From: Paragordius varius
Taxonomy: Eukaryota > Animalia > Nematomorpha
NCBI GenBank assembly: GCA_964247055.1
Contig: OZ176051.1
Location: 13,392,001 to 13,456,000, forward strand
Length of the DNA stretch: 64,000 nucleotides
Direction: 5' to 3'
Part shown: positions 3,696 through 20,777 of the stretch, piece after piece
How the letters are laid out: every line of letters begins with the position of its first letter
Position numbering within the stretch: the first letter of the stretch is position 1
Made by a program: the position numbers and the translations under genes
Notes under the pieces: generated by a model
The model's input: the letters and a program-made list of their open reading frames with translations, nothing else
Databases searched by the model: none
Told to the model about the DNA's origin: nothing

Positions 3696-4872
3696 GTGGA
3701 TACATTCCAGGTTAATTATAATTATATACATATATTATATGCCATCATTCAAAAGAAAGGTCCATAACATTTTGCGGATTACATAATTTAACCATTGCAT
3801 TTGATTATAGCCTAGTAGCCAATGAATAATTTTTTTAATTTAAGCCAATATCATATTTTTAATGATAAATTTAAGTCTCTGAGGTTGACTATTTCATAAA
3901 TTAATTTAAGGTAAAAATGTTTGGAGTAAATACAAATTCTTAAAAACTCGTATGAGACAAAAATATACTAGCATAAGAAAACGAAAATATTTGTAAGATA
4001 TTTGATTAGATTGGGCTGGATTCAATTATTCAGATGATCTGTATTTTATTAATTTATTTCAGGTAGGAATACGATTATGAGTTGTCATTATTGCTGCTCA
4101 GACGAAAACAAATATTAATCAATTTTTATCTTTTGCTAAAAAATAGCCTAAAGATATAAATGGCTAAAATATATTTGATGTTATGCGTATTTTATAAAAA
4201 ATATTTTAATAATATACTAGTTTATTTAAAAGATAATTAAATAATTTATAGGTCAGAAGATATTATAATTTTTATTTATAGTTTTTAGCCAAAAAACTAT
4301 GGCTATCATTCAATAGATATCATTCTCATGGTATCAATAAAAACAATATTTTGGCAAAGATATTATTGAATTAATATAAATTTTTAAACCTATCGTGCTG
4401 AGTATAATAAAATACTTTACAATAAAAAGATGATAAATAATATTTAGATATATTGTATAGTTACTGGCAGTTTTTTAGATGCTATTAATATTTATTAAAG
4501 GTTTTGACTATAAATCTATAAGGTGTATCATACAACTTTCTATCAAAAAGCATATTTATAGTGTGCCAAAAGCTAAAAAAAAATTTTGGCAAAACTCGTA
4601 TCGAAGGCCAAACAATTTCTCTAATATTTTATTAATTTAATTTAAGTAATAGCCTTAAAATGTCATGAGGTAGAATAAATCGTAATTATTATATTTTAAG
4701 ACTGTTTAATTATTAACTTCATAAAAATATTGATTGCAAATATTTACTTTTTATCACTAATTTGCGACTCAACTATTAATCTTATCAATGTTTTCACGAT
4801 ACATATGGATGCTTTTAAGTTTAGAAACTCTTAGGGAAATGGAAACTACCCAATTGATGTTTGGGAGAAACG
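3696..4872 (+). CDS. Tentative small exons 3696-3710, 4010-4062, 4835-4872 (possible 5' part of the 10670-18156 gene)
   Basis: tttgcag|GTGGATACATTCCAG|gttaat, gattag|...TTTCAG|gtagga and ctcttag|...AAACG|gtatgt chain in phase (1-1, 1-0, 0-2), giving GGYIPDWAGFNYSDDLYFINLFQGNGNYPIDVWEKR. An alternative acceptor at 4824 gives another frame. Confidence 0.3.
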
Positions 4873-5799
4873 GTATGTATTTAAATAATTTCACACACAT
4901 GATTAATAACAATCAATTTCCATTACCTTATAAAGACAATCAATTTTTATATAACATAATTTATTGTAAAAAACTTTTATATTTTATCAGAAATATTATT
5001 TATTGGTTGTGGTAAATAATTTTATTTATTGATTATTTATATTATAATCTTGTAACATCGTGGTTAAAAACTAAAAATTATTTTTTTATTTTTTGTTATT
5101 GCTCCATTTATACAACTTGTCCAAAAAACTCAGTTTCAATATCCTGTAATATATTAAATTTTAGGATCCTATATTAGTAGAGATAGAGATGAAATATGGA
5201 AATATCAAAATTAAAATCGCAAAATCGCCACATTATAATAAATATTTATTTACAAATATATATTTATATGTCTTTGGTTTCTCATAACCATAATCTGGGG
5301 AGCATCAGTAACCTTAACATATTATTACAAAATTATATAAATAAATGTTTGGAAAATTGCGATTTTTTTTATTGATAATCAGCCTCATTCAATTCTTCGG
5401 TTACTCAATGTTTTATTCACCTTAAAAAGTTGTCTTAGTCGATTCATAAAGAGTCATTAACATCCCAACGATCCCTTATTCGATTTATATCGGTCAAACT
5501 ATTAAAAAATTTTTTCAATTCTACATTTGACCAGGCGAATAGATTTATTATATCCTTCTTGAATAATAACCTCATTTCTATCTGAACAAACGTATAAATG
5601 GGATTCCCAACGAACTGTCCCGACTTTTCTCTAAGATTATAACAAAAAATTATAACTACAGTAGATTATTAAAAGGCGATATTTTATAAAACCTTATACT
5701 CTATAAATATAATGGATCCGATATAAATTATACGCCTTTTTTTAAATGTAATATGGCTTTCGACACAATTATATAAAACTGTTACCTGTCATTTTAAAA

Positions 5800-6720
5800 T
5801 AAAATAATATAATGGCTAATTACTCCCAACATGTTCCTCTAAAACACCTTGGCGCGCAGACGACATGTGTTTCGACTCGATTATTTTGAATAACGATGTG
5901 AGGCGATGTCTGGCGAACATTAATTCTTTTTTGCCAACCTCGAGTCTTTTCATTCCGATTCCACAAACCTTGCTTGGGATATGAAATTTTTAAACAAAAT
6001 CTATTGATCCCTTTCCGATCGAAAAATAAAATAAATCCATTGTACCCCTGTGATTCCAGCCAAAATTTGGTGGGGCATTCTTTTACCCACAATAATACTG
6101 GCGATATGACGGTAAAACATATAGCATAGCAAGTCTGAAGGATTTCCACCTGTTCTTACAGTCCGATAGTTTTTTTTTGTTATTCGAATCGTCCTCTTTA
6201 CTAACCCATTAGAATGAGAATCGTAATGAGGCGGAAAAATATGCATAATATTAAGTTTTAAACACTCTTTTGAATTCAGACGAAGTATATTGTTATCCGT
6301 TACCAGAGACTTATGAAATAGGTAGTCCAAACCGACCAAAAATATTATATAAGCTATTTATAATAAGATGTAAGCTTATTATCGAGCACAACTTCACACC
6401 ATTTACGTGTCTACTAAACAGTATCTTCCATCCGTAGACCTGTTATACTTTCGCCCAAAAGTTCCGGCCTATTATTGCTATTCTAACTATCTTTGGCAAG
6501 ATTTTCAGGATTTCAGTTTTTTTCAATGATATTTATTGAATTCCATCAGACTAACTGGTTCAAGATTTCATCTTTATGATTACCATGGGCCTATTATAGA
6601 ACTAATATAACTTTTACTCTTTTAGCAACTACTATTTTGCTATGCCATATCAGCATTCCGTTTTCAACCTGTATTTCACTGGGATTGAATCAAAATATTC
6701 AGGACAATAGCCTCTCTTAG
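5800..6720 (-). mobile_element. Ty3/gypsy integrase relic
   Basis: ENGMLIWHSKIVV...AHGNH (H2C2 zinc-finger region), SKWCEV-like core, HIFPPHYDSHSNGLVKRTIR; disrupted. Confidence 0.8.
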
Positions 6721-7904
6721 GAACAAAAAAAATTGGCTTAAAATAGAGTATTTCTCATTTTTATTTTGATTCTTAACAAATTTAGATTTTAAATCCTTGA
6801 ATCGATTATCAGAATAAATTTGTTTTAAGTTAGATCAAAAGTTCTAGATGCGATAATTAATTTTAGTTTACAATGGTTAATGTTTTGGTTTATATTATAA
6901 ATTATTTTTATAATCGTTTGACGAAAGGTTTAGTAAAATGGAGCCGGTTTCAAATGTCAAGATGTTACACAATCTTTCAATTTTAAACCAACCAAGTTCC
7001 GGTCTTGGCTCCGAAATCACCTCTATTCCAATTTTAAAATTTTACATCTCCACGGTTCAATTATTAAATTTTAGAAACCAGAATGAGTTCCTGTTCCACT
7101 TTGGAACCGGCTCGAAGCCTTATTAAAACATAATAGTCTCGATACCATATGATCCGTAGGTTTTAATTTTAATTGGTCCATATTATTATTGACAAACACG
7201 TTTTTATAGTAATCATTCATTTTTTTAATTTTTTAATGTGTTTTGATGTTCTTTTCATAAATGTCTTTTCCTCACTCAATGATTGATTGCGAACAATTAG
7301 TAATGTTTGAAGATTCGGTTTAAATTTTCATCAAAGTACAACCATTTTTAGAAAAACTCTTAAGTTGAGCCCAATTGCAAGAAATCGCCGTTTTTTTATT
7401 AGCCCAAACTTTGTCATATCTATCACATTTTTAAAATTGTAAACCACAAATATTCCAGACACGCCTTTTTTTTAGATTACTTTCTTTGAGCTTAAAACCT
7501 ATTTTAGTCTAGTCGAAACTTGTTTCGAATTATTTATGCTCAATCATATTTTTAACCGAAATAATTTACTATCAAATAGTAATGCAATACATTCACTCAT
7601 TCGAAAAATGCGTGAAATTAGCTTTATAATTTCTTATGATTTTTCTATTTATCGTTTTATTTGAAGTATATGACCAATTTCGAATCATAATTTTTATTCC
7701 TCAGTTGTAAAGATGCATATTTTATTTTATTTTTATTTATTGATATATATTTATTTATTGATATATATTTATTTATCTATTTTATTTGGTTCAAATAATT
7801 TGCTTCTTTTTTGGTTACATTTAAATATTAATCAACTTTAGTGTTTATTTTTATCTATTATTATTCTTCTTATTTATTGTCTTTTTGTTTTTTATGGGTG
7901 TTTT

Positions 7905-10000
<2,096 letters not shown>

Positions 10001-10669
10001 TTAATTTCACTTTATATGCTTTAACTTAAAGGCAGCCAAATATAAGTACTGAGTGTACTTCTCTAATCATGCAAAGTTTTGTAAATAAATTGTTTAGTTG
10101 AACATTGTATGTTTTTCCTAATATGAGCTTTTGTAAGCTCGAGCATTCCGGCTTCTGCTTATACTTGCATCTAGAGCTCTTATTTTTGTAAAAAAAAATA
10201 TTTTTTCTTTATGTGCATACCATATATAGATGTCCATGTATATAACTATGATGTTACCATGTAGATAATTGATTCACATATTGACTTATTTACCATTCAA
10301 ATCCCCTAAATTAATTTCTGGTTTATTTGCTAAATAATGTTCAGAGTATTTTTATATAATTTTTATTTTGAAGGTTTGGCATACATTTATATTAGTTTGC
10401 CTACCGATTCTTAGATTAAGATTTATTACCAAAAATGTCAAACATTTACTATCATATTTTTAACCAAATAGTAAAAGAAGTCTAAAAACTTTTTTTATAT
10501 TTTTTTATTTATTTTAGAATACCCAATTAAAAATAATAAAAAAAGAGATATGATCTACGAATATTATATCTATAAACCGCAACAAAATTAGCTTTATGTT
10601 TTTTGAAATGTCTTATAGTTATAACAATCTCATGATTGCAAATAATTTTATTTCAAATTAGTTTTGCAG

Positions 10670-11469
10670 TGTGCAAGAACATGTGTAAACTATTGTGATA
10701 CTTTTAACATTGCAAAGTGCGATTGTTCTTGCTTTACACCGGCCTATTGCGGGAATGTCATGTGCCCAGCAGGATCTATATACGATCCTGATCCGAATAA
10801 TGGATGCGCCACATGCCAAAGTAGTTTTATTAAATTTTTATACATATTTATACAATCGTTGTTATACACAATACACATCGGATATAAACCCCAATTGAGA
10901 ATCTTTTGTCAAGCCAAAAATGTCTTGATTTTTTTTCATGAATAAATATATCAGGATTTTTATGGAGAAAAATATATTGACTCGTATTTTACGGTATTAT
11001 AAAACAGGTGAAAACGGTAGAAACACTAAGGTTTTATCGGAAAATTGTTCAATATAATTTGATAAAGCTGAACATACTAAAGTACGTGTTCATCATAAAT
11101 TTTTAGTTAAATAATATTTATACCAAAAAAATTACTAAACTTTATATTAAAAGAGGTAATAGAAATTTTAGCGTCTCTAATTACATGTAAAATTAATTTT
11201 ATAATGTATTCAATTGTTTCTATACCATTTAAGAATGTATGCATTTTTACAATAAATTTTTTTAGTGTTGTAAGTTATATATTAATAATTGGTATTGTTT
11301 CGGCTTTTTTGTGTTTTTAAGAATGACCATTTAAGAGGGGAGAGGGAAATTGGGCTCTCCTCTTATAATAAAATTTTGCGATTTTTCGATGAGGACAATT
11401 ATTAAATAGTAATCCCATTTTCAAATCACTCCTAAGGCCCGAAACTAAAAGCACCATAAAAATTCTACA

Positions 11470-11520
<51 letters not shown>

Positions 11521-14137
11521 TAAGAATATTTTTTATCACCGATTACACAGTGTTATTTTAATGGGGCTTAGCCAAAATTATCTTTGCAACATTTGTTAAA
11601 AGTAGGAGAATTAAAATAACGCATAAAATGTGCTACATTAAAAATTGATTGTATATCATTACATTTTAAAATTATTAAGTTTTATAATGCAGTGTAGCTT
11701 AATAGAAATGATTCTTATAAAAATAATTCATCGCTAAACGGTAAATGTTTTGCAATATAATTTGCACTATGTATGCATACTTTTTTAAATATATGACTAA
11801 TAACGTTACTTATCTTCCAAAAGTTATATAATTATCATATTTAAAGACTTGGTCATGCCTTCAATGATAATGTTTAATTATATTAAAAAGTTTAATATGT
11901 CAAGGAGACTCTTCAAGGACTGCTATTTGGTGGGCTTAATGATATAATTAATTAAACATTATTTAAATTCCATGCGGCAAAAATGCGTATAATACATATC
12001 ACATATAAAAGGATAAAAATAAAAAATATATAAAGGAAAGACACAATAACATATGAATTTTAATTCTGATATTCAAAAAAACATATTTTTTTCAGCCAAA
12101 TTATACAATTCGAAGACTCAGTTTCATTTCTGCGACAATTGCTTATTATATTCATAAAATCTAAAATTTATAAAAAAAGCGTTAATCGAAACGAAGTTTT
12201 AAGTTTGGTTGGAAAAATGCTGAGTTCGATTGAAATAGTATTGAGTTTAGTTGAAGAGCTGCGTTAGGTTAAAAAATTTTGATTTTTAATATAAAGTTCT
12301 GTTAAGAAAGCGATATGATATAACAAATAATGGAAACAGCACGCATGGGGTACGCCCCTTCGTAATAATTATAAACCATCAGGATATCGTGCCCTATACA
12401 AGTATTGGGAAAAAACTACCATTTTATTTAATTTTTGCTTAATTGTTTTTTGGTATTATATATCCATTAGATATTATGCCAAATACAATAAGCGTCTCGA
12501 AATAGCAGACTTATACAATATACACATTTTCAGACTTATGTTGTAAAAATGTCGTATAAAAGCTTGGTTAAATGTACAATTGCAATTTAATCCGCATAAC
12601 AAGTTATATTTGTAAGGCGTTTTGAATTATATTATATTCGGCTGAAATTTTATTTATAATAATTTAATACATAAAAAAGTAGTTGAGAAATTAGAGAACC
12701 CTCCTTGGGACATCCATTGCGTTTAAAAAATGGTAAAATGAGCTATCAGTTGTTATAATTTATCTGTGGTGTTGTAGATATCGACTTCCGAGCACCGTAC
12801 TAATATAGGAATTTATTTTAGGGAATATCATTAACTATATAAGGCAAATATAATTAATTTTGGTTTCAGATTCGGCCTCCAAAATGTACCTGTCTAAAAT
12901 GGGCCATTTTTAATTCTCAAAAATGCCGATATTTCGTACATTTTTTAAATTACCAAATTTTGACATAAGAAAACGTTTTCCAAAATCGATATTTTGCTCA
13001 AAATAATTTAGAGGGATAATTTTGGGCGAATTATGGTGTTAAGCATGGTGATAACGGTATATATATATATATATATAAATCTATATATATATATACACCT
13101 TAAATTATAATATAAAATCTATATAATCCATGATGCTAACACTACCTTTCGACTCATTTGTTTGTCATATTATCTTTTGGGAGAATAATTTTATATTAAA
13201 TGTAATTTGAAAGACAAACATATACTTCTATCAAATTCTGAGTTTAAATATTATGCACCATTATATTATATAGGGTATTTATTATATGAAATGTTTTAAC
13301 AGTTTCCATAATATAATCATATAAACTCTGACTGTTAAATTATACACCAAGTATGCATTTTCAAAAATATTTTTTTAATCACATATAGTATATATTCATT
13401 CAACTTGAGCAATATTTTATGCGTCTAAAATAAAAGCTAGTCTTTATTATATCAATATTTGAGACAAGCGAGCCCACATTCAAAAATTAAAATTTTGTCA
13501 TGGTTTTGCTTTTTAAACACAATTGATTATTTTAATGATAGTGCGGACAATCCATTTGGTTTTCACAAAAAAAATTATTGTGCACAAAATTACGATGTTT
13601 TTATATAGAGTTACCATCAAAAAAATAATATTTTAATTCATTCATTTCAAAATAAAAAACACCAAGAAATCCTGATGCATTTATCTTTCAAAATGTCTTC
13701 ATTTAGGATTTTGCCAATAATTTTGTATACTGTGTATCTTAAAAAAAATTATACCATTTTATTTTCATTCTAACACAGTATTTTTTCAATAAATCCAACA
13801 TTTTAAATAACCTCATTTCCGTTTTCAATATTTACAATCAACTTAATTAATTAAAAGCATGTAATCTAACAACTCATTAATTTCCATTTTGGTCAAAATA
13901 CTTCGAACCTTATTATTTTAAGACATCATGTCTTTTTATACACAAAGTTTTTGAAGGAACTAATAATATAAGTAAAATGGAATTTAAAAAAATAATTGAT
14001 ATTTAATGCATGTGCAAAGAGCGAATGCTTAATTAATATTTTTAATAAACTTTTATAAAATATTTAGAGGCTGGGTATTCATTAAGGTAAAATATATGAA
14101 TATATGTTCATTTTTAATCAACTCGGCACATTTTAAA

Positions 14138-14220
<83 letters not shown>

Positions 14221-14989
14221 TCTTGACAGTTTATCCAAATTTAATACAATCAATGGCTCTCGTAAGAATCAAAATTTTTAAATAAACAGTGTTTATGCTA
14301 TTGAACGTCATTTTTTTAATACAAGAGAAAGTTATGATTGCTTAGAGGTGTTTATACCACCTTCCCTCCCCAAATGTATTATGAACCGTCATAATGAGCC
14401 ATAATTATTGAAAAAATATATTTTTAATAAAAAAAATTTATTTATGGTAAATACTATCACATATTATATATTATTAATAAATTTATATATCAATATAAAA
14501 AAATTTAGTTTTATTTGTTAATAAAATCTCATAATGCGCATAATTAGCCATATTTATTTTTCTAAATCAGATTTTAATGGGGATTCAACTCTATATAATA
14601 ATTTTGCAGTAATTTAAACCGCCCTGTAAAAGCATAAAATGCACAATAATAATAAAATTATATTAATTGAATTTCAGACGCACGCTTTTGTTTTAAACAT
14701 GGTTAGGATCATAGTATCTATACTTTTTAGATTATTCTTACTGTTAACGAAGTTTGAAATGCAAAATAGATATTAAAATGAATGATTTATATACATTATA
14801 AAAAATAAATAATGTTTTATAAAAAACTCTTTATCTCAAGTGATAAAACATTTTCGCGGATAGTATAGGTCGCGACTTTATAGAGCAGGGTGGCCAAGCT
14901 TTTTCTTCTCGCGGGCTAGGGGAGAAAATTTCACGCGGGCACGTATGAATATTGAGTATTACAAATTCATTTATAACAAACAAATGATG

Positions 14990-15022
<33 letters not shown>

Positions 15023-18000
15023 ATTTACAGTTTGGGGTGGCACAAAGCAAATAATTATTACGAAAAATAAATATTTTTTGAGTCATTTTTTATATAATCT
15101 TAATTATATGAAAATAAATAAATAATGTTGTTTAATAAGACCTCTGGTTGCTACAATCATTACAAATAGTAAACATAAAATTTTATAAAGATACAATGGA
15201 TAATTAATACATCTTGCGACTTCTCTTGTCAAAGATCATTAAAATTTATTTGATTTTATGGATTACTGCATACCAGGTTTTAATACAATTATTTTTACTT
15301 CACAATAAAATAGATCAAATCGAAAAGAGTGTCGCTGCAGTTTTAAGTTTTAGATATATTAAGACAATTTTTATACTTATTTGTTTTACAGCGGGAACAT
15401 TATTAATATCTACAATTAAAAGATCTAAAATAGCTTCATCTATTTATGATGCGATATAGAAAATTGCACTGCAAATTTATGAAGTGTTTAAACATTTTTC
15501 TTATTTGATGTAATCTCGAATCTTAATTGAAAATGTCGAATATATTGCAGTTTTAATTAATAATTTTTAGTTTGATTCGCTTTTATCTAAATTGTCTTAT
15601 TGATAAAGGTAAATGACAAATTGATAATGTTTTGTAATAACAGTTGTTAATACGTAGGATTATGAAAGATGTATGAAAACATAATTAGAAATAAACTAAA
15701 AATTATATTTAAAAATTAAAATTATATATAATATATGAAACCATTCATCAATGGTAATCGTAGACTATTTCGTGCTTGTTAGCACTCATCAGTGTGACAC
15801 AACTATATGACTTGGGATTATCAATATATATCCAACTTTGCAATTTTGGTATAAATGCAGTTGGATATGAAAATTTAAATTAATTTAATTGACATTTGTG
15901 AAAATTAAATTGAAAATCCAAAATTAAACCGCAAATTGAATTTAACCCTAGATATAGAGTATAGTTACTTAGGGATTCCATAGAAATCAATTTAATAACT
16001 AAGCAGCACTCTTTTTAAGAAACATAAGATAAAGTTGATATTGTAAAGGTAAATGACGGATTGATTATTTGTAATCACAATTGTTCAATCCGTAAGATAA
16101 TGATTAATTAATTATTCGTTTATCATTCATAATCTTACGGATTTAATAACTGTCTTATTGATAGTTCATGTTAAGCGTTTTTGAACTGCTTTTTTAAGCA
16201 AAGCCACGGTGGATTTGCATATCAAAGAAGTACATTTATCATTGTTCATTATAAAAAATAATCTTCTAACCATTCATTTCTGCGATATATTTTATCAATT
16301 TATGGCTTGAATTTTTAATTATACAATATAGTATATATCTTCTGTTATTTTGTTAAATTTAAACTTTATTCCAAAGAAATACATATGAATTAATAAATCT
16401 CATAAAATAAATTAAATTAATTTATTAAATATAAATTTTTGTTAACAAGTAAATTTTTTCGATCACAAAATAAATATAAATTATGAAAATAAATTATTGT
16501 GGAAAAAAAATGAAAAAAATGTTTTCTACATTTTTTAAAGATTTTAAGGCGGCTACGTTTTGAAATCTCGCGGTCACGAAATCGACCCCAGTCGATTGTT
16601 TGACCCCGGCTATAGAGTATATAGAGACTAAATGTAGAAGATTAATAAATTTAAGTTGTTCAAGAATGGATTAATCACTTATAATATACAGCTCACCAAA
16701 AAACCTCATTTTAAAGCGATGCTAACTGCTTGATATTAACATGGTATCGGCAAATTATTTACAAAAGATTTCGCATTATTTATTAAAATAATTTACTATG
16801 TTTGTTTCTGAATGCCCTTCATATGGAAATCAAGTTCCGGTACATGTAAGATTCATCATTTTATATTTTCAGGTCTAGGACAATAAATAAATAATTGATA
16901 TTTTGTATTTATTTTTTATTTTAACCACAATCAGCCGTGCCAACTAGCCCAACTACACCTGTAGCTAGCACTACTTCCATGATGGTTACGACCCCAACGA
17001 GCCCTTTGCCAACAACAGTGACAACTCTTATAAGTACGGCTCTATTAACCACCCCCTCAACAGCCCTTATTCAAACCAGCTCTGTTACTATTAGTCCCTC
17101 TTCTATGGAAACTATTCAAACATTACCATCCACTACAATGATGTTCACAAGAGGTAAAAATCGAATGAAAAATTAAAATTTACAATTTCGTAGTGAGTTA
17201 AGACTCGGTCTCTAATTAATTAGAGAGATTAAACTGTATTTGCGAAGAATTAAGTGTTATTCATATTTTCTTAGCAACAAGGGTAATAATAAGGGCCCGT
17301 TTTACCAGGCCTTTTAGTAGGAGAGTTGGAACCAGAAGGAGTACTAGAAAATATACCAGAAGAACTCCTCGGATGCGATCAAGAACACCCCAGCGAACTA
17401 TTCGTATGAGAACACCCCAAAGAACGATTCGTAGAAGAACTCCACAACCAAATAATCGCAGAAGAACAAGAGTACGAAGGACTCGTGTCACAAAAAGTAT
17501 ATAAAATTTGACTTTGCAATTGGTGCCAAAATATTAATAAGCAACTATAAACCAGCGTAAAGTTTCAATTAATTGTGACTTTACAGACTCTCTTCCGTTT
17601 TAATAAAGATTTATTAAAACTTTGAAAAGCTATAGGGCTGCCAATGATTATCAAAATTTTAGACGATCTTTGGCACACCAATGCGTGCACCCGCGCTCTT
17701 TTAACTTATCTATAATGATCTCTAAAATATGTTTACTATTTAATTAAATTTAATTTGACACCTCAATAAAATCCTAGGCTGCATAAATGAGATATTTTAA
17801 CAAAGGTTACAGATAAATAAGTGAAAAATGTTTTTTCTTATATGATAGGCTCCTGATATAGTATTTATCGCAGTTTCAACGGCAAACTCCTAGTTTTAGG
17901 GTTTAATTAATAGGGATAAAAAATGGACTAATTAATAAACTTTATCATATATTTTTAGATATTAATGGCTTAAATCTGTCCTAGGTTTTTTTGATCAACC

Positions 18001-18156
18001 TTTTAAAGTAACAATATATATCTTAAATATATTTATATATTATTTCTCTCTTTTGAATCTATCATAGGACGCACCACACGGTCACAAAGAAGAAAACGAA
18101 CCCGAAAAATAAAATTGGTTTATTCATCTTTGTTTTCGACAAAAACGAAAAATTAA
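10670..18156 (+). CDS. Spliced gene, 5' end not found: Cys-rich module + mucin-like segment + Arg-rich tail; exons 10670-10820, 16935-17153, 17275-17496, 18068-18156 (226 aa)
   Basis: All four exons have AG acceptors; three GT donors (gtagtt, gtaaaa, gtatat) join in phase 1 with no stop until TAA at 18154-18156. Each exon has a distinct non-random composition: 10 Cys in 50 aa; 44/72 T/S/P; 28/74 Arg; RRTTRSQRRKRTRK. Confidence 0.78.
11473..11518. repeat. (AT)n microsatellite
   Basis: Direct dinucleotide run. Confidence 0.95.
14141..14216. repeat. (AT)n microsatellite
   Basis: Direct dinucleotide run; source of the YIYI ORFs. Shorter runs also near 13060, 14995, 35020, 42030, 47775. Confidence 0.95.
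14886..16609 (+). mobile_element. hAT-type MITE (family A) enlarged by internal insertions
   Basis: Left end CAGGGTGGCCAAG, right end GTTTGACCCCGG; flanks TTATAGAG (14878-14885) and CTATAGAG (16610-16617), a 7/8 TSD match. Internal blocks (aatttcacgcgggca.gtatgaatatt; atcgaaaagagtgtc) are shared with 43378-44042 and, inverted, 27384-28044. Confidence 0.8.
15755..15800 (-). ncRNA. Type I minimal hammerhead ribozyme-like motif (decayed), likely Penelope-derived
   Basis: Minus strand: GTGTCACA-CTGATGA-GTGCT-AACA-AGCAC-GAAA-TAGTC-TACGATT. Core boxes and 5-bp stem II perfect; stem I partly mismatched. Confidence 0.65.
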
Positions 18157-18609
18157 CCTTACAAAATCTAATTAATTATTATTATTGTTATAAAATGTTT
18201 TAAATGATTATTATAAATAGATCAATATGTTTATTTTGAGAAAAAATTATGTTAAAATGTTTTTTTTTCCTACAAATACATAAACCTATATATTAATTTA
18301 ATTGATACATATAAGGCTCCACTTAAAGCACATATCAAACCTTTTTAAGTAGGAATTGGGTTTAATTTTGTGCACATGTTTAAGGCTTACGAGACCAATA
18401 TTGTCATATAATTTTTTATGTATTATCGTGTCTCATTCAAGCAAAATTTACATCTTTCATAAATAGTTGAGAGCAGACTTTAAAACTTAGATATATGTCA
18501 GTTAGCTTTTTTAAAAAATTGAATTATCAAAACCGGGCGTATAAAATATTTTGATAGATTACATATAATATGATAAAAAAATCAAAATTATCATGGTACT
18601 TTAAAAACG

Positions 18610-20777
18610 ATTTGTGTATCTGTCAGGGGTTTTTCGGCTTCTGGTGGGATAGCGTCTCTCGATTGGTACTTCAAGGCTTGGGGCTGCAATCTTGTCTCCG
18701 TGTGGAGTTTGTTGATTATTGTGGAATTCTTGAATATCTGGGGAAAAATTGGTATCATCTATATTAATATTGTTAACAATGAGAGGACCATGAGAGGGGG
18801 GCTATAATATTTATTATTATTGTGCTGTTCCGGTTCCGATTCTTTCTGGTCGGCGAACTTAAGTTCATCTGGACCTTCTTTTCGCACTCTTAATTGATCA
18901 GTATGTCTTCGTAAAAACTTTAATTCTATCTTCGATATTGTATGGCAATAAATCCGCTCTACTACTTTCATTTCTCTCCAACCGGCTTCTAATTCATTCT
19001 TTATAAATACTTTCTTACCTCGAACGAACTCACATATATTATTTGAGGTACCATTAATATAATCCTTTGGTATTTCTTTTATCCAGGACAGTGGTGTCGG
19101 TAAATTTTGTTTTAGGAATAGTCGTGCAGGTGTTTCATTGATACCATTGTGATGTGCTGACCTGCAAGCCCACAGTACCTGGTTTAACCGGCGTTCTGGA
19201 TCTGCTACTTCAGAATTACACATATAATAGTGCGTTTTCAAGGTTTGAATAACCCTTTCCACTAAACCACTTGTCCGAGGGTGGTATGGCGCAGAAGTTA
19301 AATGCTTGATATTAGTGGAATTTATTATTCTTTCAAATTCACCGGACCTAAAATACGACGCATTATCAGTTAAATCATCTCTGGGGTTCCATATCGTGCA
19401 AACCAACTTTCTAAAACTTTAAAAAACTGATCGAGTTTACTGTTTTAAGCTGTGCCACTTCCACCCAACTGGTACAGTGATCTATAAGCATGGCCCAATG
19501 GGCCCCGTTATATCAAGATGCAATCGCTTCCAAACGGTGGTCTTCGGGTTTCATTTAAAAGTCGGGCTTACTGCAATGTTGAGCCGTGACTTTTGACAAC
19601 TTGAACATCTTTGCACCCATTTCTCGATATCCTGGTTTAATTTGGAAACACACCAGTCTTACCTAGCGCTTTCATGGACTGGTTACCAAGGTGACATTTA
19701 TGAAAATAAGTAAGAATATCGACCCTCATGCTTTGAGGAACAATAAGACGGTCACTTAGATATAGAAGGCCGTATAACTCTTTGATATCATTTTTTAGTG
19801 GTTTATAGGACTGTACCCCGGGATGAAACCAAACATTGGTCTTTCGTGCTGCTTTAATCTGTTTACACACCTCATCGCTCATAGTTTCCTTAAGCACCCT
19901 GTCCTTGTTTATGTTTAACTCCTGATACCATAGCAACCGGACCTCCTGCGCTATATCCTCATCAGTGGCACACTCTTCGGTTATCTCAGTTGGTAGTATT
20001 GATAGTGAGTCAGATTTTCGGTTCCCCGGTAGTACATTATGTTGAAGTCAAAAATGATGTTTTTAAAATCCACCTTAGCAATATACTATTGTTTAGCTCG
20101 CCTAATGCACGTTAATGACCGAATAATTTGATAAGAGGTTTATAATCTCTTCTGATATCGAATTTTCTACCATATAAAATGTTAACTTTCTCTAGAGTCA
20201 TACAATGACTCTTGCCTTATTTTCTATAACCGAATATTTTTTTCAGCTGGGAAACATTTTTTAAATATGCAATGGGTCGTTTAATTTTTAGTTGGTTGAA
20301 ATATTTTCCGCTTCATAAATTTCCTCCCAAATGTTTTCAATGATAAGAAAAGAATTGTTCCATTTCAGAAATATTATCAATTCCCGATTGGGCAAGAAAG
20401 ATGGCTTTAATATTATCATTATTATCCTCTATTCCTTTAATTAATGGTTTTTTTTCGTAAATATTTAATATATATTCCGTAAAATTATTATTGATTTTAA
20501 AACTTTCAATACTTATTTTTTCCGTAATAATGACTACCGCGCCAATGATATTAGCGAAAGCAATTTATTGTGGCATAAAAAATTATATATATCTATGTAT
20601 AAATATATTGCAGTTTATACAGTTTTAGAGCAAGGTTGCATTTTTGCAGAAGGTTAAATATTACAATATCTAGATGAAAGGATTCACAACCAAGTTATAT
20701 ATTTGCATAAGGTTATCTATTACAGTATTTGAGTGAAGGCATTCACAACCAATGTAATATACATATTTAACATAACA
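18610..20777 (-). mobile_element. Internally deleted Ty3/gypsy element A: 5' LTR, PBS-like site, gag-like stub, RNase H, integrase
   Basis: Integrase HLTSAPYHPRTSGLVERVIQTLK, WKRLHLDITG, RRYPTRSRKTPDRY; RNase H KRPIAY. PBS-like TGGCGCGGTAGTCA at 20544-20531. The RT domain is missing (junction ~20285). Confidence 0.88.
20546..20777 (-). repeat. 5' LTR of gypsy A (232 bp)
   Basis: Minus strand starts TGTTATGTT and ends TATCA, contains AATAAA, and is followed after one base by the PBS-like site. Shares a motif (ttgtga...tttca.ct..atattgtaatattta) with the LTR at 33459. Confidence 0.75.

Follow-up and report, generated by a model that had tools for sequence, protein, structure and literature searches.

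The TES-120 mucins of Toxocara canis (MUC-1 to MUC-5) join a Ser/Thr-rich tract to six-cysteine SXC/ShKT modules, and basic tails that bind DNA or RNA are familiar from protamines, from the hepatitis B core protein, and from viral arginine-rich motifs. We analyzed a 64-kb stretch of DNA from the horsehair worm Paragordius varius (here called the window; C2:13392001-13456000 of an assembly of 110.6 Mb) and describe in it a gene whose predicted product has a head with ten cysteines, a stalk rich in Thr, Ser, and Pro (T/S/P), and an Arg/Thr-rich tail free of acidic residues. Comparison with related loci indicates that this gene is an unannotated five-exon member of a lineage-restricted family. 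The window is very AT-rich eukaryotic DNA, with a guanine plus cytosine (GC) fraction of 0.23-0.38 per 2 kb; the published assembly of Gordionus montsenyensis has a GC content of 26.9% (10.1101/2023.06.26.546503).

Gene model and modules

The revised model comprises five exons and 257 codons spanning positions 4788-18156 of the window (plus strand), with AG/GT at all borders and every intron in phase 1. The original prediction had joined exons at 10670-10820, 16935-17153, 17275-17496, and 18068-18156 into one gene for a cysteine-rich head, a mucin-type stalk, and an arginine tail; these four exons translate exactly as it quoted and the single-gene design holds, but a further 5' exon at 4788-4872 had been missed and the first acceptor lay 8 nt off. 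Borders and junctions agree with its statement that every module occupies a symmetric phase-1 exon of its own. This phase pattern is the one feature in keeping with its suggestion of exon shuffling; the Cys and Arg exons were found in no other gene context in this genome.

Exon 0 (4788-4872, plus strand, 85 nt, ending in phase 1), recognized by paralog homology and by its borders, starts with ATG and encodes a leader (MFSRYIWMLLSL...) with a basic residue, an 8-residue hydrophobic core, and an LMFGRN end before the donor G|gtatgt. Six paralogs have a first exon homologous to it (L019:7274-7360, L025:792-878, L026:3145-3225, L027:5483-5569, L029:2441-2527, and L030:2523-2600), each of which starts with ATG and runs for 26-29 codons to a phase-1 donor. 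Judged from sequence features, all seven leaders share a signal-like layout of Met, a basic residue, and 8-10 hydrophobic residues, with M-F-G-R at the exon end; a polar stretch lies in between in the six paralogs, and the core of the window copy is short, at 8 residues. M-F-G-R is invariant (7/7) and is followed by Lys in six of the seven leaders, the window copy reading MFGRN, and synonymous codon changes are found within the MFGR(K) motif while the peptide is kept. We also observe that this motif (window 4860-4872) resembles a Gly-dibasic (amidation/convertase) site placed just 5' of the Cys module, and that one leader subfamily reads EYGxMFGRK.

Exon 1 (10662-10820, plus strand, 159 nt, phase 1-1) encodes the ten-cysteine module, with the spacing C-x3-C-x3-C-x7-C-x-C-x-C-x5-C-x4-C-x12/13-C-x2-C and without His. 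Across the ten copies of the exon that we compared, none of the 10 Cys varies, nor do one Gly and one Tyr. Because the AG sits 2 nt 5' of the L-Q-C codons in 10/10 copies, we set the start of the exon by the acceptor at 10661/10662, the position kept in the paralogs, and rejected the acceptor at 10669/10670. Exon 2 (16935-17153, plus strand, 219 nt, phase 1-1), assigned from its composition and from its position in the paralogs, supplies the stalk; at 61.6% T/S/P it qualifies as a mucin-type Pro/Thr/Ser (PTS) tract. The paralog stalks occupy the same position and are built of PTTPTT/PSTPST repeats of varying length, their exons ending in K or R followed by G|gt.

The Arg/Thr-rich, acid-free tail begins in exon 3 (17275-17496, plus strand, 222 nt, phase 1-1), which is supported by its open frame, its substitution pattern, and its motifs and holds 28 Arg and 14 Thr among 73 residues. 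Exon 4 (18068-18156, plus strand, 89 nt including the TAA stop) adds a basic end piece (RTTRSQRRKRTRK...) and then a short mixed sequence. The final 103 residues of the protein contain 35 Arg, 7 Lys, and no Asp or Glu, and the numbers of Cys and Arg and the T/S/P share reproduce those originally reported. In the paralog L019 a counterpart of exon 4 (ag|GA, RTTTRQRRRQTLKN, stop) lies in the same phase 136 nt past the exon-3 donor, and none was found in L020 or L021. In the subfamily at 12.3 Mb exon 3 is terminal, with the protein ending inside it, and is 105-115 residues long and internally duplicated; the Arg exon of L026 is located at C2:12335378-12335727.

The peptide has a net charge of about -2 over the head, about 0 over the stalk, and +42 over the tail, and is therefore a tethered polycation and not the polyampholyte that had also been proposed. 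Any negative charge would need putative glycans or phosphates as its source.

Paralog family and selection

A six-frame search of the genome recovered 11 copies of the Cys exon, of which ten are complete and one is interrupted by a stop; every copy is on contig C2, within the interval 12.27-14.39 Mb. The Cys exons are followed on the same strand by Arg exons, and acceptor, donor, and phase are identical in all copies. The module order Cys, T/S/P, Arg is kept at eight loci. In the compact paralogs L019, L020, and L021 the Cys, PTTPTT/PSTPST-type, and Arg exons follow each other within 1-2 kb; L024/L025, L026, L027, and L028 keep the order with longer introns, and so does the partial duplicate of the window gene, L022/L023. 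Recurrence of three modules in the same order is far more than chance would be expected to give and makes a chance origin of the arrangement unlikely. The window introns measure 5.8 kb (exons 0 to 1) and 6.1 kb (exons 1 to 2), compared with 0.4-1 kb in the compact paralogs, and other apparently intact members also have introns of 5-8 kb. Since the order recurs in the paralog loci, we take the 6.1-kb intron between head and stalk to be a stretched form of the 0.4-1-kb intron and no arbitrary join. The family is estimated at about 10 loci clustered on one contig, of which some 7 look intact.

The Cys module and the tail are both under purifying selection. The median pairwise ratio of nonsynonymous to synonymous substitution rates (dN/dS) is 0.30 for the Cys exon, with dS above 1 (saturated) between subfamilies, and the family is on this basis old and constrained; compared with its decayed duplicate, the window Cys exon gives a dN/dS of 0.25. 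In the Arg exon the median dN/dS is 0.25, with six different Arg codons in use. No frame but the sense frame is open in 7/7 copies, and this frame has the lowest dN/dS in five of the six pairs; the next lowest belongs to the antisense frame with the same wobble positions. The original prediction had stated that the open reading frame (ORF) track contained this exon only in antisense; an antisense ORF is indeed listed at 17261-17491 (minus strand), but so is an ATG-started sense piece of 43 residues at 17373-17504. We rejected the antisense hydrophobic ORF as a coding frame, as it has stops in one paralog, a higher dN/dS in 5/6 pairs, and a phase that disagrees with the conserved splice sites.

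The motifs RFTR[LP]F and R[MR]RSRTPxR are conserved across the paralog tails, and these conserved non-basic residues argue that there is more to the tail than bulk charge. When seven tails (window 17277-17495 and those of L019, L020, L021, L024, L026, and L027) are compared with shuffled versions of themselves, furin-type R-x-[KR]-R motifs are scarcer than expected (12 observed vs. 26.5 expected), as are dibasic pairs (60 observed vs. 85.7 expected), and RT/TR dipeptides are enriched. The depletion of convertase motifs is suggestive of a tail that must survive convertases intact.

Not all family members have remained whole. Window positions 8101-18699 are collinear with C2:14371600-14385800 (minus strand) at 80-95% identity, long intron included, as a partial segmental duplication. 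The duplicate (C2 14.371-14.386 Mb) is without exon 0, has frameshifts in exons 2 and 3, and carries an additional broken Cys pseudo-exon (L023:6766-6879), whereas the window copy has stayed intact. In L028 the leader has a stop and the tail a frameshift, and a further fragment, 71% identical, is found at C7:9456105-9456881. With three genome copies of the locus DNA in all, we rejected a high-copy repeat or transposon cargo as the nature of the locus.

The L025 locus (C2:12300489-12303066) contains two family Cys exons in divergent orientation, 2.3 kb apart. The one on the plus strand (L025:2911-3066) is without a canonical phase-1 donor, neither a leader nor a stalk or tail could be found to go with it, and it may be a lone exon copy. 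Transposon remnants lie within and beside the window gene (8101-9368 and 18759-19936, minus strand), among them an ORF resembling the end of a reverse transcriptase (8908-9126) inside a block 93% identical to a paralogous locus, and integrase-like ORFs directly 3' of the gene with a weak rve_3 match (E 0.0011, under the Pfam cut-off). The introns further hold a trinucleotide microsatellite (9330-9470) that yields poly-Ile ORFs on both strands and a (TA)n run at about 14100-14225, with comparable (TA)n tracts in the paralogous loci.

Searches for relatives

All searches were run exon by exon, with single exons or single-exon profiles. Scanning each exon against Pfam-A with hmmscan at E values up to 10 returned no family; protamine, histone, and zinc-finger families gave no match to the window exons at this threshold, nor did TIL, VWC, ShK, antistasin, EGF, Lustrin_cystein, or the other Cys-rich modules of Pfam. 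A profile of the ten paralogous Cys exons had no match among PDB sequences at E up to 10. Against 1.84 billion representative proteins it produced two matches, which we judged to be compositional and rejected: both are long repetitive proteins, Cys-rich or unrelated, aligned over short sub-stretches. In metagenome contigs of the Joint Genome Institute (JGI) the profile gave 50 pattern matches, of which none was confirmed.

A word-based search with the longest single-exon paralog tail (115 residues) listed 605 candidates, none of them significant; the ESM Atlas gave no usable match to the Cys exon, and literature searches for this architecture or for secreted proteins of hairworms found nothing relevant. 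The original reader's failure to recognize a characterized family is matched by these per-exon Pfam, PDB, and protein searches. The family thus appears to be an orphan, with no homolog detected outside this genome in Pfam, PDB, the 1.84 billion proteins, or the JGI contigs, and it adds a 10-Cys module without a Pfam match. Genomes as AT-rich as this one are hard to annotate, and the locus is an example of how entire gene families can stay hidden when their short phase-1 exons are spread across long introns.

Possible role and comparison with known systems

The conserved leader with its phase-1 intron, the ten invariant Cys, and the PTS tract fit together, and for this reason we read the product as a probably secreted, disulfide-bonded, O-glycosylated protein. 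Our favored reading, to which we assign a probability of roughly 45%, is that of a secreted, O-glycosylated mucin tethered electrostatically in extracellular material. The protein would enter the secretory pathway and have its leader cleaved off, possibly with a second cut past the Gly-Arg-Lys site; the Cys module would fold via five disulfides, the stalk is predicted to be O-glycosylated, and the tail, at about +42, would bind a putative polyanion, for instance glycans (sulfated or acidic), an acidic protein of the matrix, or a surface layer. The molecule would in this way become an electrostatically anchored mucin of the cuticle or surface coat, of the egg string, or of another adhesive.

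Several points weigh against such a role. The hydrophobic core of the window leader has only 8 residues and is followed by charged ones, and hydrophobic ORF starts are frequent by chance in AT-rich DNA. Splicing and expression are deduced from paralog comparison only, and the motif-depletion test treats related paralogs as independent. Disulfide bonding, as opposed to metal binding, is an assumption for the Cys module, because the AlphaFold2 model built on the 10-sequence alignment of the exon is too poor to decide it, with a mean predicted local distance difference test score (pLDDT) of 51 and a predicted template modeling score (pTM) of 0.28.

Other roles have to be weighed on much the same features. 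The strongly cationic, acid-free tail with its R-T-P motifs, the prepro-like leader ahead of it, and a multigene family that is locally expanded and length-variable, as many immune effector families are, would also suit the precursor of a cationic host-defence peptide, in which the Cys module and stalk would serve as a carrier or propeptide and the Arg/Thr tail would be set free, intact or in fragments; comparable cases are known in cathelicidin-type Pro/Arg peptides and, among crustaceans, in arasin and hyastatin, which are Pro/Arg plus Cys peptides. We nevertheless consider this unlikely: the border of stalk and tail has no conserved dibasic site, only one K or R standing at the end of exon 2; the tail does not use furin-type and dibasic motifs but is depleted in them; conservation is as strong in the Cys module as in the tail, an unusual situation for a mere propeptide; and neither Pfam nor word-based searches revealed similarity to known antimicrobial peptide families. 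There is only a slim chance, in our estimate, that the protein is instead an intracellular binder of nucleic acid, in sperm chromatin or on RNA, with Cys residues holding zinc or another metal, the tail on DNA or RNA, and exon 0 no signal peptide. A tail with 38% Arg and no acidic residues, its RT/TP motifs like those of phospho-regulated basic tails, the resemblance of the C-x-C-x-C run to metal-binding motifs, and the weak hydrophobicity of the window leader would fit this, but 7/7 leaders are laid out like a signal peptide, with an n-region and an h-region, and precede a phase-1 intron, PTTPTT-type repeats are typical of extracellular O-glycosylated stalks, the Cys module offers no His, and Pfam protamines, histones, and zinc fingers were not matched at E up to 10. 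Arg stretches as dense as this tail cross membranes and serve as nuclear signals, the organism is taken to be a parasitic horsehair worm, and the family is lineage-restricted and expanded, so that a host-directed effector, in which the polyarginine tail would, in the parasitic stage, take the secreted protein into host cells and on to the nucleus or nucleolus, has to be considered. It earns very little credence from us, as a heavily glycosylated stalk with a disulfide head would be a poor membrane-crossing cargo and a dN/dS of 0.25-0.30 carries no sign of an arms race.

Least probable of all we hold a prohormone-like precursor, in which the piece before Gly-Arg-Lys would be released and amidated as "...MF-amide" (EYGxMF in one subfamily), with the Cys module and glycosylated stalk as carriers, like neurophysin and copeptin in vasopressin precursors. 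The motif that suggests it is present in every leader (M-F-G-R in 7/7, Lys next in 6/7), survives synonymous codon changes, and directly precedes the Cys module; against this, the window copy has GRN and so no dibasic site, the residues ahead of MF differ widely among subfamilies, ten paralogs with long conserved tails are unexpected for a peptide precursor, and a plain propeptide cut accounts for the motif equally well. The family being real, its window copy may still be unexpressed or decaying, stretched over 13.4 kb by insertions. Introns of 5.8 and 6.1 kb in place of 0.4-1 kb, with transposon remnants and microsatellites inside them, the lost Lys of GRK, the short hydrophobic core, and the clearly broken state of L022/L023, L028, and the C7 fragment point that way, yet all five exons are open, in phase, and bounded by canonical splice sites, all ten Cys are retained, the Cys exon shows a dN/dS of 0.25 against its own decayed duplicate, and apparently intact members share introns of 5-8 kb; we think decay of the window copy rather improbable.

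The tethered mucin therefore remains our preferred account. An extended form of it, which we regard as doubtful, would have this family, so far known from one genome only, combine a five-disulfide fold of a new kind with a mucin stalk and with an Arg/Thr polycation that is conserved in sequence and resists convertases, to give a self-tethering or coacervate-forming extracellular material, for example an egg-string or cyst adhesive or a protective coat. More daring is a version in which the protein would be a delivery vehicle, carrying a cleaved N-terminal peptide of MF-amide type or entering host cells. In any case the design is unusual for what is probably a secreted protein: the mucin bears a conserved polyarginine/threonine tail, and this tail apparently avoids convertase motifs. 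Were the tail to anchor the mucin on anionic surfaces or to promote coacervation, adhesives or protective coats would have in it a molecular solution of a new kind; a self-tethering or coacervating family would suggest that this phylum has a polycation-based extracellular chemistry not described before, and tethering would further open a way into the extracellular biology of these animals, of which almost nothing is known. Should the family be expressed in parasitic stages, it would become a candidate for host interaction.

Compared by description and by Pfam, the Toxocara TES mucins are like this family, with its signal-like leader and predicted O-glycosylation, in joining a signal peptide, a small Cys-knotted module, and a T/S/P tract for O-glycosylation in a multigene family of a worm. 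Here, in contrast, the module has 10 Cys with other spacing and no Pfam match, ShK included; it precedes the stalk, whereas it follows it in Toxocara, whose TES mucins lack a polyarginine tail. Protamines and sperm nuclear basic proteins resemble the last 103 residues in being more than one-third Arg, in having no acidic residues, and in their Thr/Ser and TP motifs. The tail differs from them in that it has no Pfam protamine match (E up to 10) and no word-based homolog, keeps conserved Phe, Leu, Met, and Gln positions, which are not a protamine trait, and forms the C-terminal part of a 257-codon protein with a signal-like leader, a 10-Cys module, and a mucin stalk. The cathelicidins Bac5, Bac7, and PR-39 and the crustacean arasin and hyastatin are, as the window protein may be, secreted precursors with a Cys-stabilized part and a strongly cationic Arg-rich part, but the tail here is rich in Thr, not in Pro, no processing site was found at its start, and there is no homology.

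The vasopressin/oxytocin-neurophysin-copeptin precursors are comparable to the predicted product in architecture alone, with a signal peptide, a short peptide, a Gly-dibasic site, a Cys-rich domain, and a glycosylated part in succession; they are not homologous, they differ in Cys number and spacing, and the window protein is without the dibasic site and has a polyarginine tail. For the function we propose, the nearest analogy from general knowledge is with the basic region of R-spondin, CXCL12-gamma, and the retention motifs of VEGF and PDGF, in which a disulfide-rich head with an unstructured basic tail is held on sulfated glycans. The tail described here has no sequence relation to these and is far longer, richer in Arg, and conserved in sequence, with a mucin stalk set between head and tail.

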